A stretch of 63,301 nucleotides of DNA, the filler included, from Choristocarpus tenellus KU-1152 (Eukaryota > Protista > Phaeophyceae), in the NCBI GenBank assembly GCA_964200185.2. It is 6 parts of 6 records of this genome, joined end to end, with 100 filler letters (N's around TTAATTAATTAA, not from the genome) between each part and the next. Parts side by side here need not be neighbours in the genome. Positions count along the whole stretch, not along the records: positions 1 to 16,842 come from CAXNAD020000760.1; 5 more parts are not named here. One strand, given 5' to 3'. Shown piece by piece: positions 1 through 11,386 of the stretch; positions within the stretch are counted from its first letter, which is position 1; every line of letters begins with the position of its first letter. Under the pieces are notes generated by a model. The model was not told the origin of the DNA, did not search any database, and saw nothing but the letters and a program-made list of their open reading frames with translations. Made by a program: the position numbers and the translations under genes.

Positions 1-811
1 GGGGCGGGGGGGGGGGAGGGGTCCATCCGATCGCAGTGATTCGAAGTTCGAGTCACACAGGCACTGGGGATTGTATGTCTGCTCTACTATCCTCCTGTCT
101 TCTCACTACACCACCAAAAAAATACCACCTGGGCAACCACAAGTTTCTAGGGCGACGTAAACCAGCATTATTCCGGATTTGGTTGGCAGCCTGCGCATCA
201 AAAGTTCCTACTTGAACCACTCCTTTGGATGCATCTTTGGTGTCCTGGATGCTACGCGAGCCTACAGACTCAGTGGGTGGCTGTGTGACTTGACAAGGGG
301 CTCTGGGTCGATCACTCAACGCTACAGAACACCCTGAACGACTAACTGGAAAAATGCTGCTGAGGGAGAGAATGCCACACAAGTAGACTGTACTCCGAAA
401 AATCACTGCTGTGTGCTGTGCAATTGTTGAGTCTTACTAGAAAAATGAGAAGGACAGTTGTGAGACCTATGTTTAAAATCGAGCCTTTTTGGGGGGAGTG
501 GGCTGCCAACTAATGCAGGAAATTCCCAACATTGGATATATTTCTTGACCTTTGCAGACAATTAAATCGGAGGTCAGAGCGGTGTGAGGGCTGTGTTATT
601 TTCCACCAAGAGAGTGCATAATTTGATACACCACCAAGGGCCACAAAAAATCTCACATAGTCGTACAACATTGCCAACTCAACCACAGCCTATGTTCGGA
701 GCTGAACCCAATGCACTAGACATACTGGAGTAGAACATGGCAAAAGGGTGAGATTGATTACGGGGAAAACACCATATCCTTCCAAACCCTTGTCCAAGAA
801 GACAAACTCAC

Positions 812-3800
812 CACTTGAACTCCTTATGACAAACTTTGCACGCATCTTTATCCTCCTGCGAGGATGAGGATGAGCTGTGATAGCTTTGCAGCCGGCGGGC
901 CCGGTCCTTTTGTGCATCAATCCTAGAGTCCCTGGAAACTCCCCCTCCTATAACCTTGCCTCTTGTAGCATCGTCGTCTCCCGCCCCCCCATCCTCCCCA
1001 CCTACCCTTACAGTACCTATTCCCTTGGCCTTCTTCAAGCTCACCATTACAGGCGTCCTCCGGCGCATTGGCAATGCAGCGCTGCTTGTCTTGCGGACCG
1101 AATCCATTTTTTCACGATCCGACTTCGTCCCAAGAGACCCACCTGAAAAACCCTTTCGCGGTGTGCCCATCCCAAGCTTTGGTGAAGTAGACAGAGATCG
1201 CTCTCTCGCCCCCAATTGATTCAGAGGGTGCACAGTGGTGAGCTCAAGTTTGCTTTGACGATGGGTCACTCCATCGAGTCCAATCCTCGCGCCATTACCG
1301 TTTCTTGCACCAACATTATGCACTTCGCCTCTTCTCGCCAGTCTCCAAACTACTATCACACTCAGAATGGCCATGGTGACCGCAACCACCACTTGCCAGT
1401 GAATCAACCCCTCACTATCCATGCCCCTGCTGCCGCAATCCCCTCGCCCCACAAGCACCTTGAACTCCACTGCCTTGCTGTGGCCCATTGCATTCCAAGC
1501 CTGCAGTGAGTAAGTGTATCCACCCCCAGGCTCCAGTCGTGTGTCCAAGAAGGAGCGGTTTGGCCCGTCCATGACCTTGATCCATTGCTTACTGTGTCCC
1601 CCATGCTCCCTATTAGACTCACTTGCTGCCCAGCGAGGTCCTTGTTGGTTACCACCCCAAGCCCTCTTCAAAACATACTTGTGCACTGGGAATCCATCCT
1701 GATCACCCTCTCCACACTGCCACTCTATACTCACTGATCCACACGAGGAGTTTGTTGCACGTACTTGTGTTGGGGCCAGTGGTTCCTCCCCCATGCCCCA
1801 CAGCTTCCACTTCATCCCACGCACCAGACGCTTCCGATAAGCTGGGTGCTTAATGCCAAGGTCCTGCTCCAAGAGGTGTCCCTGTACAGGAAAGGGCATG
1901 TGGGGAGCTCAACGGTGAGTGTGAGGCGTGTTGGTGAACATGAGTGGATAACAATTCCTCTATAATCTTATGCGATTTGAGATGTCTATTCTATTGGTAC
2001 TGGAGAGTACAGACGAAATATTTTTTTTAAAAGGTAGCACCCTAACTGATATTGCACATTTTATGGGATGGCGTGTTGCAATTGAGGTGTCACCAAATAT
2101 GCAAGACGGAAGGCAGAAGAAACGAATCCTCAGCATGGTTGCACAGATGTGATTCATCAAGTAGCCAAAGTAAATAGCACCACGAAGTGTAGGGTTTTGA
2201 CAAAAAAAAGAAGGATATCACAAGTGCTTGAAAGTGCAACAGCATGATGCTTGGAGTACTAAGTGACACAAAGAGATGCGTGATTATATAAGCCCTAACC
2301 CTAACCCCTCTGAATACCGTGGGTAGGTTGATTTCACAATAACTTCAAGCACATCCCGCCTCCTGAACTTCTTCTCCTTACGGCTTGCTTATGCTGCTGG
2401 ATGGGGATAGGCAACACTCCAACCAGAGGCTTAATTAGGCCACTTCATACATACATGATGAAAGAAGAACAACAGAACATCATACAATGACCCGGGGTCC
2501 CCATCACGATCTCACTCAACTGTCACATGATCTGAAGTGTGCACTTCGAAGTAAAACTACTTGATAAAAGTGATGTACAAGCAAAGGACAGTTGCCGGTA
2601 CAGTCAACACAAGTTAGCCTGCTCACATTCCTAGGACATCTGCACTGGATCGTGTGCAAACATGTCACCTAGCCCACCTGGTTCGCAACGAGCTCTGGGA
2701 AGTCGTAGCCGGTGACCACATTGCTTCGCATGACCTCGGCAACCTCCTGAGGAAGCTGGACAGAGTGCACAACCCATTCAGCAACTTCATCCACCGTCAG
2801 CAATGAGCCTGCCATCAAGCAGATGATAGGAGGCGAGGGAGCGAAGCAATGCAGTGAAGAGCACAAACAGACGGTTGCGCATGTGAGAAGGGAGGGAGGA
2901 GAGCCCCGGTTCAAGACCAAGGAGGCAGATGATGATACCCACCTCGAGTCAAAGGAGTGTGGCACTACCCTTTCTCACATTCCATTATCTAGGGGCATTC
3001 TACACCAGCATCTAAAAAATAAATAAATAAATAAATAACAGGACTGCGTATGACAAAACATGTAACAGACCAGCACATGAGATATATATATATAGAGAGA
3101 GAGAGACAGAGAGAGACCTAGACCAGTGCGACAGTCTCTGCATGACCCCGTCCCATCCTAAAAAGAAGGGCGCCACCATTATTTTCTGGTTGTAAGCTCC
3201 TGAGTGTCGGCTGAGTATCTTTGCAGCGGGTTGGTTGGCCTTGTCTTCCTCACGATCTTCCTAGTTCGGTGGCGTCTAGTCTAGATCAGGCTGCACGAAC
3301 AACAGAGTTTCGGAACTCAAAATTTTGATGGTTTTTCAACTTTGGAAACATGGTGCAAAAGGGTTCCTCTATGACTTTGGATGCTCCAACAAGTTCCTCC
3401 TCTCAGAGAGAGTGGTGGAAATGTTGAGAGATTGCAGGCAGGCAGGCAGGCAGGCAGGCATCGATTGATTGTCCGGTTCAAGTTGCGGCGATGGGGAATT
3501 CGCGTGGACTCTGCATACACTAGAAAACCTCGTGTCATGAAGCAGATCCTTCAAGGGCAAGTTCATTTGACTTGACGATGGGTCGGCCTTGTTCAAGGGC
3601 ATACAACAAAGTACCAGTACAGATACAATAACTTCACGGTGAGTGTGCGCAGGTCACTCACTAATAACACTCTGTTGGTGAGTGATGCCACTTACAGAGA
3701 GTACAATAGCCACAGGCAGAGTGGCGAGGCATTCGAGGGCCCTAGATGAGCAGCTATGAGCAGCTAACTAACTGCTGGAGTAGCAATCAATCACCCTAGA

Positions 3801-6800
3801 GAGGTGGTAGCCAATCACACCATCACCTGTTCAGAATATATATATATATATATATATAATTTTAAACACCTGTTGTGGCCTTTCTTGCTTTAGAACTGAG
3901 TGCTGAGAGTCAACAGCTTGAGAAATGCAAGCTGAAGGACATAGTTGACCCCGCCATGTATGACTCTATCCGCCACACATTGAACACTCTGTCCAAGAGG
4001 ATTCAGGTGAAGGTAGGAGGATGAGGACGAGCACGTTGCACTGTGCTCTGTTCCACTTCGGTCTCGCTTACTGTCACAGAAGCTCATCTTCCCCCATAGG
4101 TACCAACAAATCCAGATTCAACAAAACAATACATGTGCCTCCTTTGAGCACATGTTCATCGTATGAGACGCAACACAATCTCCCCATACCTTGACAACAC
4201 ATTCTTCTTCCAACCACCTGGTTTCAAATTCGTGATAAGCACCCTCCAAAACCTCCACCCTAACCCTCTGTAACTATAATTTTTCTTACAAAGTGAGAAA
4301 TTAGAAGCTTTCACACCCTGAACAACGTAACACTCCACACAATGTTATGCCCACAGCACTCCAGTCCAAAACACATACAACAAAATGTGGTGCCTGTAAC
4401 ACTCTGGACCAAAACATACACAGCAGTTGCTGCTGTTTTAGCGTAAATTATTATGCCGTAACACAAAATGTGCAGTTAGAACATAGTGTTACTCCTTAAC
4501 ATTCTCCAAAGTATTGTGATAGCACCCCACTGTGTTGTACCATAATATAACATCACAAGTTACTCGAATGAAACAGGAAAAATCGCACTGTTCATCTACA
4601 GACTTCACGGACACTAGTGTCTCTCAGCATCACAATATATATATTTGCTCGTTCTTGATTCCATTTAAAGTGTTGCATGGTGATGATGACTTGGGTGTGC
4701 GATCACAAATCCAGATGATCTATCCTTCCCTTGCATTGATGTTGTGAATCTCACACAAAAACTATTCATTCACTTCTAGTCCGGAACTTCTCCACAAACT
4801 CTACCCTACCTAGCCAGCATTACATTTTGTGTTGTGACACAATGTTTGTATCACATTAAAATGACCACATTGTGTTACACCCATAACACTGACGACATAA
4901 ATATGCACAACACTATGTAGTGCCCAGAAAAATCCGGATCAAATCACATGTGTGTTATGTAAGCAACAGACACTCTTGCAACTCTATGTTAACACAGTGG
5001 TAACACAGTGCTGCAAAAGTGAAATATGTTGTCCAAGATGTGAAATCTGCAACATTGATTGTCAAGAGAGCATGGGGCCCATAAGCAAAAAATCTCTCTT
5101 GCCGTTGCAGTAAGAGCTCAATGCACTCCATTAGGATCACACAACAGTATCCTCCATGACCAAAACAGGAATGACTGGCAGGACACGTGCACCACGTACT
5201 CACCCAGTCGAGTCCAGTATGATAGGAGGTCTGATCTTGATAGGGTTTTATCCTCATTCAAGTCGAGGTGTTTGAATACACTTTCCACACCAGCTGCTAT
5301 CTCTGATGCCTCGTCAAGGCCTGCACCCCCTGTGCCTGTGACAAGCTGATGAAGAAATGCAAACGTGTGGGCGATGCAGTATGGAGCTAATAGGTTATCT
5401 TATGGTTGGGTAATGCTTCACACATAGAGACCCAAGTGAAATAGTAGCAAGTACCGACTTGGACCCTGCAAGTATTGCACTTCGATCTTGGATTTTCCAC
5501 CGACAACAGCCTTGGAATTAACGTTCTAACATTAGTAGCGCCACTAACTTGAAAAGAGTTTTAACCACACACGATTGACCCTCTCAATGTTTTCTGAATA
5601 CTCAACAAGTGTTGTCTGACCGTTATTAATTATTCCGTCAAGAACATGAGTTTGCACTTTTTCAAATGCTCTATATTATTTCAATTTGGCAAATACAACC
5701 TTTGAAATGTTACACTCATTACTCAGGGTATCTAAACCACCGTTCTTCACACACCCCAGCAATTTCCTGAGGTCAACTCTAGTGATGAGCAAATTGCCTT
5801 CAGGGGGGACTTACAACCCCTAAAAAACCTCCATCAATTCAGTTCTTAATATTCAAGCTTTCTATCACCTTTCTTCATATTCTAAGAGTGATTATATAGA
5901 TGTGAGGTGGGCACTAACTCAAGGAGGAACTATATATACTCTGCGGAAATGTTCATGATCGTACTCTACAGGACCTTGAATGGGATGACCAATCTGTGAA
6001 TTCACCTTGGGGCAGCGACATAAATGTTAGCACCAGGTAGATCTTATTGTGAATAAACACCTGGGTGAGTTGTCTGAAGAACTGGCAAATGGAAATCCAT
6101 CGAAGAGAAAAAACAGGCGAAGAAAAACTCCAATTTCCACGCTCAATACGAAAACGGTCAGAAGTGGTAGAGACTTTGTCCATGAAAACTCACATCTTGA
6201 ATTTCTTCGGACTCAATGAAGCCGTCATGGTCCTTGTCTGCTCTGTCGAAAAATTCATCTACGACAGCTTTCGGCATTTTCACCTCCCTCGCCATCGTTC
6301 CAACTCCTCCGACCAACATCTTGGCTCCCACTATGGTGAGCAGAGACATCGACACGAGTACCAACACCTGAACTAAACAAAGAGAAATTTTCCAAGCCTC
6401 AGACGCGCGTTTTGGGCTGCTGCTTCCACGTCTCAAATCTCCTCTTCTCGTGGGGGGCTCCCATCTCAACCCCCCATTACTCCTTGCCGAAGATTGAAGA
6501 GGCCCATCAGAATCAAGTTGAGAAAACTTCTCTTTACCATCACAGGTCGAAGAATCAACTATAGCTGAGCCAGGGAGGAGCATGGACACTTTTTCAAAAC
6601 CAGATATTGAAGAAAATGCCTCATCTGGGCTGGTAGTGGTCGGGTGAGATAACCATTGCCACCGCCTGCTTGGTGCCTGCCTAATCCTTCCCTGGGAGTA
6701 GGGAGAACTAGCAGCTGGTGAGACCCCTGACGGCGAGCTTGTTCTCATCCTTCGAACCATTCCCCATCTTCTACCAGAAAGGGTCAATCTGCTGAGTCGT

Positions 6801-6901
6801 ACACCCTCGGGGGGCCCACACGAGGACGGGGAGGAATCTTCTGAGTCCTGGCAAGTGGAGTCGGTACAGTTGGAAGGAGGTCGTGCCACCTCCCACTCCA
6901 T
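812..6901 (-). CDS. STIM-like EF-hand/SAM membrane protein with FN3 domain and probable FYVE-type zinc finger (multi-exon, 3' end not found in window)
   Basis: Exons 6901-6194, 5345-5204, 2808-2678 and 1881-812 join in frame with GT-AG sites. Product: S/R-rich N-terminus, TM (ISLCLVQVLVLVSMSLLTIVG), EF loop DKDHDGFIESEE, second EF DLNEDKTLSRSD, SAM (LTVDEVAEWVVHSVQLPQ...YRKRLVRGMKWKLWG), FN3 (W...Y.L...LEPGGGYTYSLQAWNAMG), TM, basic tail, then CKVCHKEFKW at the last donor. Confidence 0.8.
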
Positions 6902-7570: not shown

Positions 7571-9045
7571 GTGGGCGAAATTGCCAGCCACCTTCTTACC
7601 TTCTCTTCTTCGCAGACAGCTGAATTGAGACTCTACCTTGAGCAGTTTCTGGGGGATTCAAAGGCAAGCTATGGAAATGAGAAGGCTGAGCGAGAGATCC
7701 CATTATCTATAGTAACGTCACCGACCTTAGACAACGGAAAGAAGTGCGATCGGTCCCGCCCTTTCGTAAGAGCTCATATATGATGTCTGACGCGTAATAT
7801 CGACTACACCTCACGCTTTCATCGAATCTGTTGCAGCAGGAGGTCCGTGACCTTTGCTCAGAACTCATCAAGCGACTGGGGAATGAGGGGGTAAGGAAAG
7901 GAACTAAGACTGAGGCGAAGGGTGACTTTTGGGATGCCACTACATCTGAGATAGGTCATGCATCGAACCAGACAGCTAGACAGGGGCAGCGACAGGGGCA
8001 AGGAAACAAAGGGAAGGGTAAGGGAAGAGGGAAGGTATACCAGAAAATTGCTGCTGAGGATTTTTGGGGGGGTGGAACCTCATCAAGCATGACAAGCGTA
8101 CCTACTACTCAACCTGTAGCAACCCCACTCCCAACCACTAACCCATCACGTACTATTCCAACCCAGTCTGGCAAGAAAAAGAAAGCACCATCCACTACTG
8201 CTCCATCGCATGCCTCGACTTCTGGTGGGAAGAGCAAAGGAGGTGGAACTCAACAGCGTCCAACAGTGAAAGCAGCTAGCCCTCAGCCCTCTACCAAGTC
8301 ACAACTTCCGCCACAAAAATGGTCGGGAGTGACCTGTACCTGCATGGCAATAAGGCACAGTCTGATAACCAACTGCACGACCTGTGGCAAGATAGCCTGT
8401 GAAGCAGAGGGTGGTTACGAATGTTCGTTCTGCAGGTCTCCCCTCCCTGTAACAGGGAGGGAACCCACAGCAACTAACAGCTATGCAGGGTCTGCGAATG
8501 ATCAGCCACAGTCGGCGGCACTGGCAAAGGCTGTTGCCCGCAAAGAAAAGCTCCTGCTTTTTGACCGTACATCCGTGGCCAGGACACGTGTCCTAGACGA
8601 TCAGGGAGATCACTTCTCTACCTACAATTGGCTATCACGGGAGGAGAGAGAACGTGCCGAGGCCAATGAAGTGGCCCGCAAGGAAGAGCAGTTGGCCAGA
8701 CGTAGAAAAGTGACTGTGTCCTTTGACATTATGGGACGCAAGGTTGTTGAGGCAGACAATGAGGAAACACCACAAAGTTCTGGTGAAGCAGTGACAACTC
8801 TAGGCGAGCAGAGGGATGCACAACTTCAGGGTAGTGGAGATAACAGTCCCGAGTCAAGGGCAGGAGAAAATAAGCAAAGTTCACTTCCTGACCGCCCATC
8901 ATTGCATAACTCGGGTCTACAGGGCCGTGCCAAGGAGGTTTATGATATCATGCGTGCCAACCTGGACAAGAGGCAAAGACACGTCCATGGTACTAGCAGA
9001 AGGTCCATTAGCAATAGAAGTACTAGAGATCCTAGGAAGGCTTAA
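7571..9045 (+). CDS. ASC-1/TRIP4/Rqt4-like C2HC5 zinc-finger protein (first exon not located)
   Basis: Long exon ~7840-9045 contains CTCMAIRHSLITNCTTCGKIACEAEGGYECSFC (zf-C2HC5), then KEKLLLFDRTSVARTRVLDDQGD and VTVSFDIMGRKV, typical of the family. Probable upstream exon from 7571 (VGEIASHLLTF). Confidence 0.85.
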
Positions 9046-9326: not shown

Positions 9327-11386
9327 CTAGGGTCTCGCAACATTGGTTGAAGTGTCCTCTTTGGCACTCATTTCTTCCGTCAGCTGAATCAAAAAGTCTG
9401 TGCAGAAAATGGTAACGGCAATGGGGATAGCCACTGCAACGAGGTTCTTGGTCATCCCCCGAAGTGCAAACTGCGGGCCATCTTCCCGGTGAAGCTTTGC
9501 CAATGTTGCCCTCACCCCTAGATCTGTCTTGAACATTTCATTTCGAAGCACATCAACAGGGTTGGTCAAGGCAGCCCCAGCAACCCCTGCTGCAACTGAC
9601 TTCTTCGCCGACCTCAGGAGAGTTCCGGTTTGATCTCCCAGGTCTGCTGGGGGCAGCATCCTCTCCATATAGTCCTGGGTATGGAGTTAGGGATTAACAC
9701 ATGATTGGGGCCGCATTGAGACACCCATGACAGTGCTCACAAGAAATTATGTTGCACAGGTACATTGCATGGAAACTCTTGAAGATGCATCTTTATCCTA
9801 CTTGTTGTAGTTGAACATGGTGTGTCTTGGCACTGGGCAATTTCTTGTATCTTGAATCACGTGACAAAAAAGATAAATTTTAGACGAGTGGTTGCAACGC
9901 TGACAACAAATTCACTGTGTATATAGTAACTCCAAGCACAAGACTTTCTAGATTTTTTGTTGCCCTACCTGGGTTATGCTGTTCAAACGTGTTGGGATTG
10001 CGCACCAATACTGCTCACCTTCACAGCCACTGCGACACAGTACTTGGGGACAGTTTTCATGACTCCGGCTGAAGTTCCATGCCATAGACCTGCAATCCCT
10101 TTGTGGTGGTATATACCCCTCAATGCCTCCAGAACAGTGCGGTAGGAAGTTGCAGGGTTCTAGTTTTGGGATAAATTTGTAAGACACACAAATAGACAAC
10201 AGTGCAGAGGAGAGAACAGGAATGGTGAAAGACAACCCTACATATTACGATGTTTTTACCAGTTTGATCGATTAGAGTCGAAGGGCTGAAGGCACCCAAG
10301 ACTGCGTACCACCCAAGCTCGATGTTGAGATCTAAAAATGGATGTGGAAAGGGATCTGTGTTATGGAGATAGAGAATACTGAACCAGCAGTGTTGGGTAG
10401 TTGAACAGTGCAGGGAGAGTTGTCAACTGCATTACAGAACACCTTTTGGTGTAAAATTGAAGCCAAAACGAAGCACACTGTGATAGAGGTGCTACATGCA
10501 CTAAATGCTATTGCATCCCACAAAAAATTGTTGCAGATTCACAGTTTTGAACATATTGAAGCAATCTGTTGATACAAAGGTTTTGTTGATGACTGTGAGG
10601 TTAGAAATCTTGTGCCTGCCCACCTGAATCGTGATGCTGAGGTTCTCCCAGGCGGTAGGATGCAGGTGGGGTCAACAGCAGAGGACGAGAGGTCCGGGCG
10701 GGGCGAAAAGGGTGGTCGGCAGTCAGATTTTGGTCCCCACTTGTGTGGATGATCGATGGAATTCCAGAGATTCGACCACCCCGTTTGATGTGACTGTGAT
10801 CCATGGTGTTCTCCTGCCTCTCTCAGACCTATCCTTCACTTAGATTGCAATGCAGGTCGCACCTTGCACGGATGATGGGCATGTTTACCAGCTGAACTGA
10901 AGTAGAGCATATCAGGGGAGGCAAACCAACAGCTACAACACGGTTGGAGCATCCCCTGTCCTCGAGCGCGACCTTTCCCCGATCACTTCCGTAAAATATG
11001 AACGCACGAGCCCACGTCATCTGTAGGCGACGTCAACGGGCACGGACCACTTCGTCAGTGATGCCACCCCTCCTGGTGTGGTGTCGTAGTCCATATATTC
11101 AAGAAAAACTGGTAGAAGCATTGATTCTACAACAGCATGTTCGCTGTCTTTGCACTAATTTGACTGCCACACCACCAACAGACACAATTCTCACCCCTAA
11201 AACCGTAGCCGTTACTCCCCTGTAAGGTGGTTTGAGTCCTTCTATGTAGCGCTTCAGTATGCCACCCTGGATTCCCTTATCAAAGCCGCTCTGACCCATA
11301 GCTGATGCTTTCCATAGTGGGAAGTTGATGCATGCCGCAAAAGCCGAGGCAGCCAGATGACATGCGGGGTAGTCAGCTTTCGACAT
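9327..11386 (-). CDS. Mitochondrial carrier (SLC25) family protein, atypical
   Basis: Exons 11386-11195, 11020-10863, 10636-10624, 10159-10019 and 9674-9327. Three carrier repeats with PLWKAS / PIIRAS / PVDVLRN and second-half motifs YRG, LWHG, LRG. Confidence 0.8.

Follow-up and report, generated by a model that had tools for sequence, protein, structure and literature searches.

Does a brown alga possess a Ca2+ sensor of the animal STIM type, and to what output is it connected? The question is raised by a gene on the minus strand (positions 6901 to 812) of a 63,301-nucleotide (nt) stretch of DNA from Choristocarpus tenellus KU-1152, assembly GCA_964200185.2; this whole stretch is referred to below as the window. 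The EF-SAM module has been regarded as exclusive to animals and their nearest kin. Published surveys date the appearance of STIM, and the use of SAM in controlling Ca2+ stores, to the root of the animals or close to it (PMC7016017; PMC11506743). No STIM has been detected in diatoms and other algae that possess Orai, and these are expected to rely on another sensor (PMC11085791), while in two oomycetes, Phytophthora and Saprolegnia, neither STIM nor Orai was detected (PMC9694693). Here, we describe a gene whose product, as predicted from the sequence, is about 731 amino acids (aa) long and consists of a cytosolic N-terminal region, a transmembrane (TM) segment, two EF-hand loops, a SAM domain, an FN3 domain, a second TM segment, a basic tail and a FYVE-type finger. 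It is a new architectural variant on the STIM EF-SAM module, widespread in stramenopiles and haptophytes. We consider it probable that it represents a STIM-type EF-SAM sensor module, placed in a twice-crossing membrane protein with FN3 and a FYVE-type finger and belonging to a wider algal and oomycete family, which would serve as a Ca2+-switched tether or signal.

Four GT-AG exons lie within the window, on the part that carries the gene (the whole contig C760, from an assembly of 164 Mb in 27,310 contigs), and the fifth and last is on contig C21294. The features are listed in the order of the transcript.

6901 to 6194, minus strand: exon 1 (E1), 236 codons, first in-frame ATG at 6901, donor GAT/GTGAGT.
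6194 to 6901, minus strand: content of E1, a 168-aa Ser/Arg-rich N-terminal region (putatively cytosolic), the first TM segment and the first EF-hand.
6323 to 6388, minus strand: first TM segment (TM1), E1 residues ~172-193, Kyte-Doolittle maximum 2.45, with 4 K/R in the preceding 15 residues.
6203 to 6238, minus strand: loop of EF-hand 1, DKDHDGFIESEE, canonical at ligand positions 1, 3, 5 and 12 and at Gly 6.
5345 to 5204, minus strand: exon 2 (E2), 47 codons and 1 base followed by GTGAGT; linker and second EF-hand.
5229 to 5264, minus strand: loop of EF-hand 2, DLNEDKTLSRSD, pattern D-x-N-x-D ... D; Pfam EF-hand_6 E 1.4e-3.
2808 to 2678, minus strand: exon 3 (E3), 2 bases and 43 codons; N-terminal two thirds of the SAM domain (LTVDEVAEWV ... 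FPELVANQ).
1881 to 812, minus strand: exon 4 (E4), 356 codons and 2 bases, donor TG/GTGAGT.
1786 to 1881, minus strand: start of E4, last SAM helices; the terminal L-W-G aligns with L-F-G of STIM.
1477 to 1776, minus strand: FN3, opening with an N-S-S glycosylation sequon.
1345 to 1407, minus strand: second TM segment (TM2), E4 residues ~159-179, Kyte-Doolittle maximum 2.44, followed by W-R-L-A-R-R.
841 to 1344, minus strand: cytosolic tail, 168 aa, 33 K+R against 18 D+E, 17% Gly+Pro.
812 to 840, minus strand: CKVCHKEFK, with the first Cys pair of the finger, followed by the split Trp codon.
1 to 811, minus strand: 5' part of intron 4, which leaves the contig at a poly-C tract.
C21294 3089 to 2945 (L002 1624 to 1480), minus strand: exon 5 (E5), 47 codons and the stop; rest of the finger.

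The link to STIM was assessed first of all on the SAM domain. The exons served as separate queries, and the joined protein is represented by natural full-length orthologs, P0152 (560 aa) among them. The best match of E3 alone (53 aa as translated) in the PDB is the EF-SAM of STIM1, 2K60, with E 0.027 among 177,635 sequences. A profile of the whole EF-SAM (A1, 39 sequences) was uninformative on STIM, as calmodulins dominate its PDB matches via the EF-hands, and a profile of the SAM only (A2, 54 sequences) was used instead. Its top matches are STIM1 2K60 (6.5e-8), STIM2 2L5Y (1.2e-7) and C. elegans STIM 6PW7 (2.5e-5), and the best non-STIM SAM is Caskin-2 (1.3e-4); the margin of the three STIM chains over all other SAMs is about 8 to 11 bits. 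The refuting condition set with the original prediction, a SAM no nearer to STIM than generic SAMs are, is thus not borne out. The segments are colinear with STIM in order and spacing, and the STIM1 string which the original prediction had quoted agrees with the real 2K60 sequence in a HMMER alignment. The family SAM profile scores 74 bits on E3. The Pfam SAM models (PF07647, PF00536) have no match in E3 alone, the SAM of the window being split by an intron, and P0152 reaches 20.3 bits against a cut-off of 20.5; SAM_2 is matched in 27 of the 39 members, at best with 1.9e-11.

The predicted fold points in the same direction. An AlphaFold2 (AF2) model was made on A1, its first row being P0152 residues 38-201, which share ~60-80% identity with the corresponding part of the window; it has a predicted local distance difference test score (pLDDT) of 91.7 and a predicted TM-score (pTM) of 0.84. 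Foldseek against the PDB is led by 6PW7, 2L5Y and 2K60 (TM-scores 0.71, 0.64 and 0.56 over ~150 columns), with all others at 0.43 or below. By VIA-align, the STIM EF-SAM structures gave Z of 15.7, 12.1 and 10.5 across 135-147 residues, at a root-mean-square deviation of 2.6-3.1 Å, and the next chain, matched in the EF-hands only, gave 8.6. The nearest three clusters of the ESM Atlas comprise one of oomycete EF-SAM-FN3 proteins (fn3 in 96% and SAM_2 in 91% of members) and two of animal STIM, both with the STIM EF-hand family in 100% of members and one with SOAR in 100%. We thus conclude that, judged by sequence and predicted fold, the whole EF-SAM unit, beyond its parts, is homologous to that of STIM, and that the STIM-like character claimed for it was correctly recognized.

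Both EF-hand loops look Ca2+-competent from their residues. The first EF-hand is matched by Pfam EF-hand models (E 6e-5 to 1e-3), and across the 39 members its loop keeps D at position 1 and D/N at position 3 without exception, G at position 6 in 37 and E at position 12 in 38. In the second loop, D at position 1, a hydrophobic residue at position 8 and D/E at position 12 are each present in 39 of 39. This is unlike STIM, whose second, 'hidden' EF-hand is not known to bind Ca2+.

The rest of the protein bears on the side of the membrane on which this unit would lie. Searched as single exons with Pfam, the gene yields weak EF-hand and FN3 matches and none for SAM. The FN3 that had been read from the sequence is borne out through relatives: in the window it scores 18.3 bits with PF00041, under the cut-off of 25, and homologous segments reach 27.3 bits in P0014 and 61.1 bits in P0019. 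The N-x-S/T sequon at its start is common to the subclade of the window protein. FYVE fingers are cytosolic domains in known proteins, and since one TM segment separates the EF-SAM-FN3 block from the finger, the block should be luminal or extracellular. Single-pass relatives (P0008, P0019 and P0028) have signal-peptide-like N-termini directly ahead of the EF-hands, which likewise argues for an EF-SAM outside the cytosol, as had been supposed. On this basis, the EF-SAM-FN3 block would point into an endomembrane store or out of the cell, with both ends of the protein in the cytosol.

On the cytosolic side, the tail is rich in Gly, Pro, Ser and Thr, its longest Gly/Pro-free stretch is 33 aa, and it is probably disordered. 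It is too short and too rich in Pro and Gly to hold a CC1-SOAR unit. No match to SOAR (PF16533) was found in the genome, nor in the ten relatives scanned, several of them full-length, and the claim that this output element of STIM is missing here stands. Ahead of the finger, at ~880-935 on the minus strand, there is a basic helix-like motif (A-R-R-L, then a Ser run), which relatives share (E-A-A-R-R-L in P0152 and P0001).

The tail ends in a finger that is split between two contigs. E4 breaks off within a Trp codon at TG/GTGAGT, therefore the gene must extend beyond the start of the contig. The remainder of the finger was not found in the three minus-strand frames of window positions 1 to 811, and the last exon was located by a genome search in which the C-terminal end of a full-length relative served as query. 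E5, immediately after an AG, opens with the single G that completes the Trp codon, encodes Y-H-K-A-K-H-A-C-C-K-C and further Cys pairs, and reaches a stop. It sits 156 nt from the end of C21294, and this end overlaps the start of C760 for ~76 nt around the poly-C tract at ~80% identity (window 1-110; L002 1660-1780). The overlap is probably a low-quality assembly break caused by poor homopolymer reads. Another candidate for the last exon, L003 on contig C6771, was ruled out, as it shows 40% identity to P0152 against 55% for L002; it looks like the end of a second paralog.

At the level of the family, the finger is confirmed as FYVE. A profile of the family finger (A3, 60 sequences) matches the FYVE domains of Vps27, WDFY3, EEA1 and Hrs with E from 1e-8 (Vps27) to 7e-5, and Pfam FYVE (PF01363) is found in 57 of the 60 members at E<=1 (best 1.4e-7). 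The best fold matches of the modelled P0152 finger are FYVE domains as well (probability ~1, TM-scores 0.55-0.60, E ~0.01-0.07). Eight Cys in four CxxC-like pairs are invariant in the family, and the window together with L002 has the same Cys pattern. Like Vps27, Hrs, EEA1 and WDFY3, the family thus has an eight-cysteine cross-braced finger, and many members keep R-H-H-C; unlike them, it has neither WxxD nor RVC, it places the finger at the extreme C-terminus of a membrane protein, and it has four further invariant His/Cys positions. The latter were noted among 12 invariant positions of the finger, as H25, H43, C48 and C54 (A3 numbering, P0152:492-560). They suggest a third metal (zinc) site, and the conserved His of R-H-H-C may be a metal ligand rather than a lipid ligand.

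The FYVE-like tail of the original prediction is accordingly upheld for the family, and its phosphoinositide-binding role is in doubt for the window copy. Most members, including the named diatoms, read K-R-x-R-H-H-C. The missing 3' exon had been expected to encode R+HHC; the exon was found, on C21294, and RHHC occurs in many relatives, but the window copy reads K-H-A-C-C-K-C, because of which phosphoinositide binding by the window's own protein seems doubtful. Of the signatures for binding phosphatidylinositol 3-phosphate (PI3P), this copy has no Trp before the first Cys pair and no WxxD, and C-I-C replaces RVC; diatom-type relatives retain R-H-H-C only.

All of this requires that the exons belong to one gene. 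The minus strand carries every motif quoted in the original prediction, each in its place, and the four-exon order of TM, two EF-hands, SAM, FN3, TM, tail and CxxC fits throughout: donors are of the GTGAGT/GTGGGC type, acceptors are AG preceded by pyrimidine-rich sequence, the introns between E1 and E4 measure 848, 2395 and 796 nt, and the phases match. P0152 is encoded mRNA-like, by a single open reading frame (ORF) that is flanked on either side within its 2.4-kb contig. By tblastn it is colinear with all five exons (E-values for E1-E4 of 3e-10, 3e-16, 2e-17 and 3e-59), its residues 1-71 being placed on E1 at 6364-6197. Moreover, a contiguous 18.5-kb genomic contig of a relative (L013) carries the same five exons likewise arranged, 740 nt separating exon 4 from that of the finger, and E1-E4 of the window and the L002 exon correspond to them one by one.

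The analysis of reads covered window positions 1 to 2000. In a public run whose kind is not on record (X3), a 1232-nt contig at depth 167 spans 810 to 1884. It extends by 157 letters, the first of which match the final part of exon 3 exactly in reverse complement; this is the spliced E3-E4 junction. The contig stops at 810, where the intron and exon 5, both GT-initial, cease to share letters. The flanking intron contigs in X3 have a depth of ~12. Diatom members of the family originate from MMETSP transcriptomes. Taken together, the colinearity of P0152, the order in L013, the X3 junction and the diatom MMETSP members support E1-E5 as one transcript, as had been assumed. We also note that X3 behaves like RNA and that the gene appears well expressed in that sample.

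E4 alone retrieves 296 relatives, 57 of them at E<=1e-10, and many are full-length with the same architecture. Together with the colinear alignment of P0152, this lies well beyond a chance resemblance. The search for this architecture in stramenopiles, which had been suggested at the outset, was fruitful: the family spans brown algae, diatoms, pelagophytes and oomycetes, and also haptophytes. Named members include Ectocarpus siliculosus D8LBP1 (P0154), Phaeothamnion CAM9753437, Chrysoparadoxa CAM9278012, Chrysophaeum KAJ8612240, the diatoms Ditylum (A0A7S4V3N0) and Stephanopyxis, a Pavlovales haptophyte and oomycetes, all of them annotated solely as hypothetical or unnamed. The nearest named relatives are ochrophytes, consistent with the ochrophyte setting proposed for the protein. 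P0008 and P0014, which were inspected in full, share both the window architecture and clear homology, and the other named algal and oomycete relatives are assigned by homology alone. Some relatives, such as P0019, have several FN3 domains as well as tandem EF-SAM-FN3 units, preceded by a signal peptide. A search of the full-text literature, subscription papers excluded, turned up nothing that describes a STIM-type EF-SAM in any of these lineages.

How might such a protein work? With STIM1, STIM2 and C. elegans STIM it shares an EF-hand pair packed on a SAM outside the cytosol, the same order and spacing of elements, and its nature as a membrane protein whose output is on the cytosolic side. 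It differs from STIM in having FN3 between the SAM and the TM segment, and the window copy has an additional N-terminal TM segment and cytosolic region; with two hydrophobic segments, it is not a single-pass type I protein. Furthermore, CC1/SOAR/CAD and the polybasic end of STIM are absent, and there is a disordered basic tail ending in the FYVE-type finger. By analogy, the protein may sense a Ca2+ store, reside in the endoplasmic reticulum and bind lipid. With Ca2+ on both canonical loops, the EF-hand pair would clamp the SAM, and the ectodomain would be compact and monomeric. A fall in Ca2+ would loosen the EF-SAM and let it self-associate, as the EF-SAM of STIM does, and this would bring together the TM helices, hence also the cytosolic tails and fingers. 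Clustered fingers would gain avidity for a lipid or protein on the facing membrane. In relatives that keep RHHC the ligand could be PI3P, and in the window copy with its KHAC another ligand is likelier. The outcome would be a tether or a signal.

Several points speak against this mechanism or weaken its basis. As for the transcript, E3-E4 is the sole junction directly seen in reads over the stretch covered, and the locus was not found in the public runs that are on record as RNA. The fold was modelled on the ortholog P0152 instead of the window's spliced protein, and AF2, having seen the STIM structures in the PDB, may reproduce a packing of EF-SAM that it had learned there. Two competent-looking loops, against one binding and one hidden in STIM, may mean that affinity and switching differ. 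With FN3 sitting between SAM and TM, the way in which STIM transfers its signal to the membrane need not apply, and if this marine alga carries the protein in its plasma membrane, the EF-hands would always be saturated. At the finger, most of the R(R/K)HHCR signature has been lost in the subclade of the window protein, and P0152, its closest ortholog, has no Pfam FYVE match.

One alternative, which we take seriously albeit as an unlikely one, is that the protein is a cell-surface receptor or adhesion protein in which Ca2+ is a structural cofactor only, the finger directs endocytic sorting and no store is sensed. FN3 is typical of extracellular proteins, the repeated FN3 domains and tandem units of P0019 would suit such a role, both canonical EF loops could stay filled at seawater Ca2+, and FYVE domains usually act on endosomes. 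However, the EF-SAM unit is kept whole, with STIM-type packing, and the only characterised proteins with this unit are Ca2+ switches. Besides, animal STIM1 is partly located at the surface, which makes surface location and sensing compatible.

We find it harder still to favour a functional equivalent of STIM, in which the tail and finger take the place of SOAR and the protein opens the alga's Orai, directly or indirectly, on store depletion. An Orai exon is present in the genome (L005 310-810, minus strand, on contig C13992; Pfam Orai-1 39.3 and 38.6 bits, over the cut-off) and retains the pore glutamate in the context L-V-E-I-S-I, the genome has no SOAR match, and Orai-bearing diatoms and brown algae without detectable STIM should have another sensor (PMC11085791). 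Against this, the protein has no Orai-binding element, and its tail holds no coiled coil of CC1-SOAR size. Oomycetes hold EF-SAM-FN3 proteins, yet Orai is reported as undetectable in Phytophthora and Saprolegnia (PMC9694693), and an obligate pairing with Orai is disfavoured because these organisms have the family but reportedly no Orai. Direct Orai gating is possible but unsupported. That the resemblance to STIM is generic or convergent, with an ordinary EF-hand pair beside an ordinary SAM, is highly improbable: the whole EF-SAM profile puts calmodulins above everything through the EF-hands, the Pfam STIM EF-hand model is matched weakly and in 5 of 39 members, and identity to STIM is just 19-23%, but the SAM alone favours the three STIM chains by the margin given above, the inter-domain arrangement fits across ~147 residues and exceeds every other chain by about 2 to 7 units of Z, and the segments follow the order and spacing of STIM.

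We thus return to the STIM-type EF-SAM sensor module in a twice-crossing membrane protein as the preferred reading. A bolder version of it, to which we give little credence at present, is that EF-SAM was not invented by animals and choanoflagellates but is an older eukaryotic unit, or one that was transferred between lineages. Stramenopile and haptophyte algae with Orai would then have, in the EF-SAM-FN3-FYVE family, the store sensor that has been missing, and clustering of its cytosolic fingers would translate the loss of luminal Ca2+ into the opening of Orai or into membrane contacts. In any case, the family gives the open question of the algal store sensor a concrete and genetically testable candidate. 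A STIM-type EF-SAM outside animals alters the picture of how this module evolved, and the replacement of SOAR by FN3 with a FYVE-type finger would constitute another route from luminal Ca2+ to a cytosolic signal.

The genome also contains a second EF-SAM paralog on contig C18369 (L008/L009), with its EF2 and SAM exons split elsewhere. A second FYVE-type last exon, similar to P0011 and P0024, lies at L003 354-530 on the minus strand of C6771, and the C18369 paralog possibly ends there.

Within the window, the EF-SAM gene stands head-to-head with a TRIP4/ASC-1-like gene, ~930 bp away, which is seen as a 404-aa ORF at 7831-9045 on the plus strand (zf-C2HC5 41 bits, TRIP4_3rd 44 bits). An ORF at 9327-9668 on the minus strand resembles mitochondrial carriers weakly, at 20.7 bits where the cut-off is 22.3, and is probably one exon of a carrier gene. 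Introns 2 and 3 of the EF-SAM gene contain repeats at 2291-2307, 3434-3460 and ~3836-3858: an interstitial telomere-like (TTAGGG)2, a (TGCC)n run and a (TA)n microsatellite.

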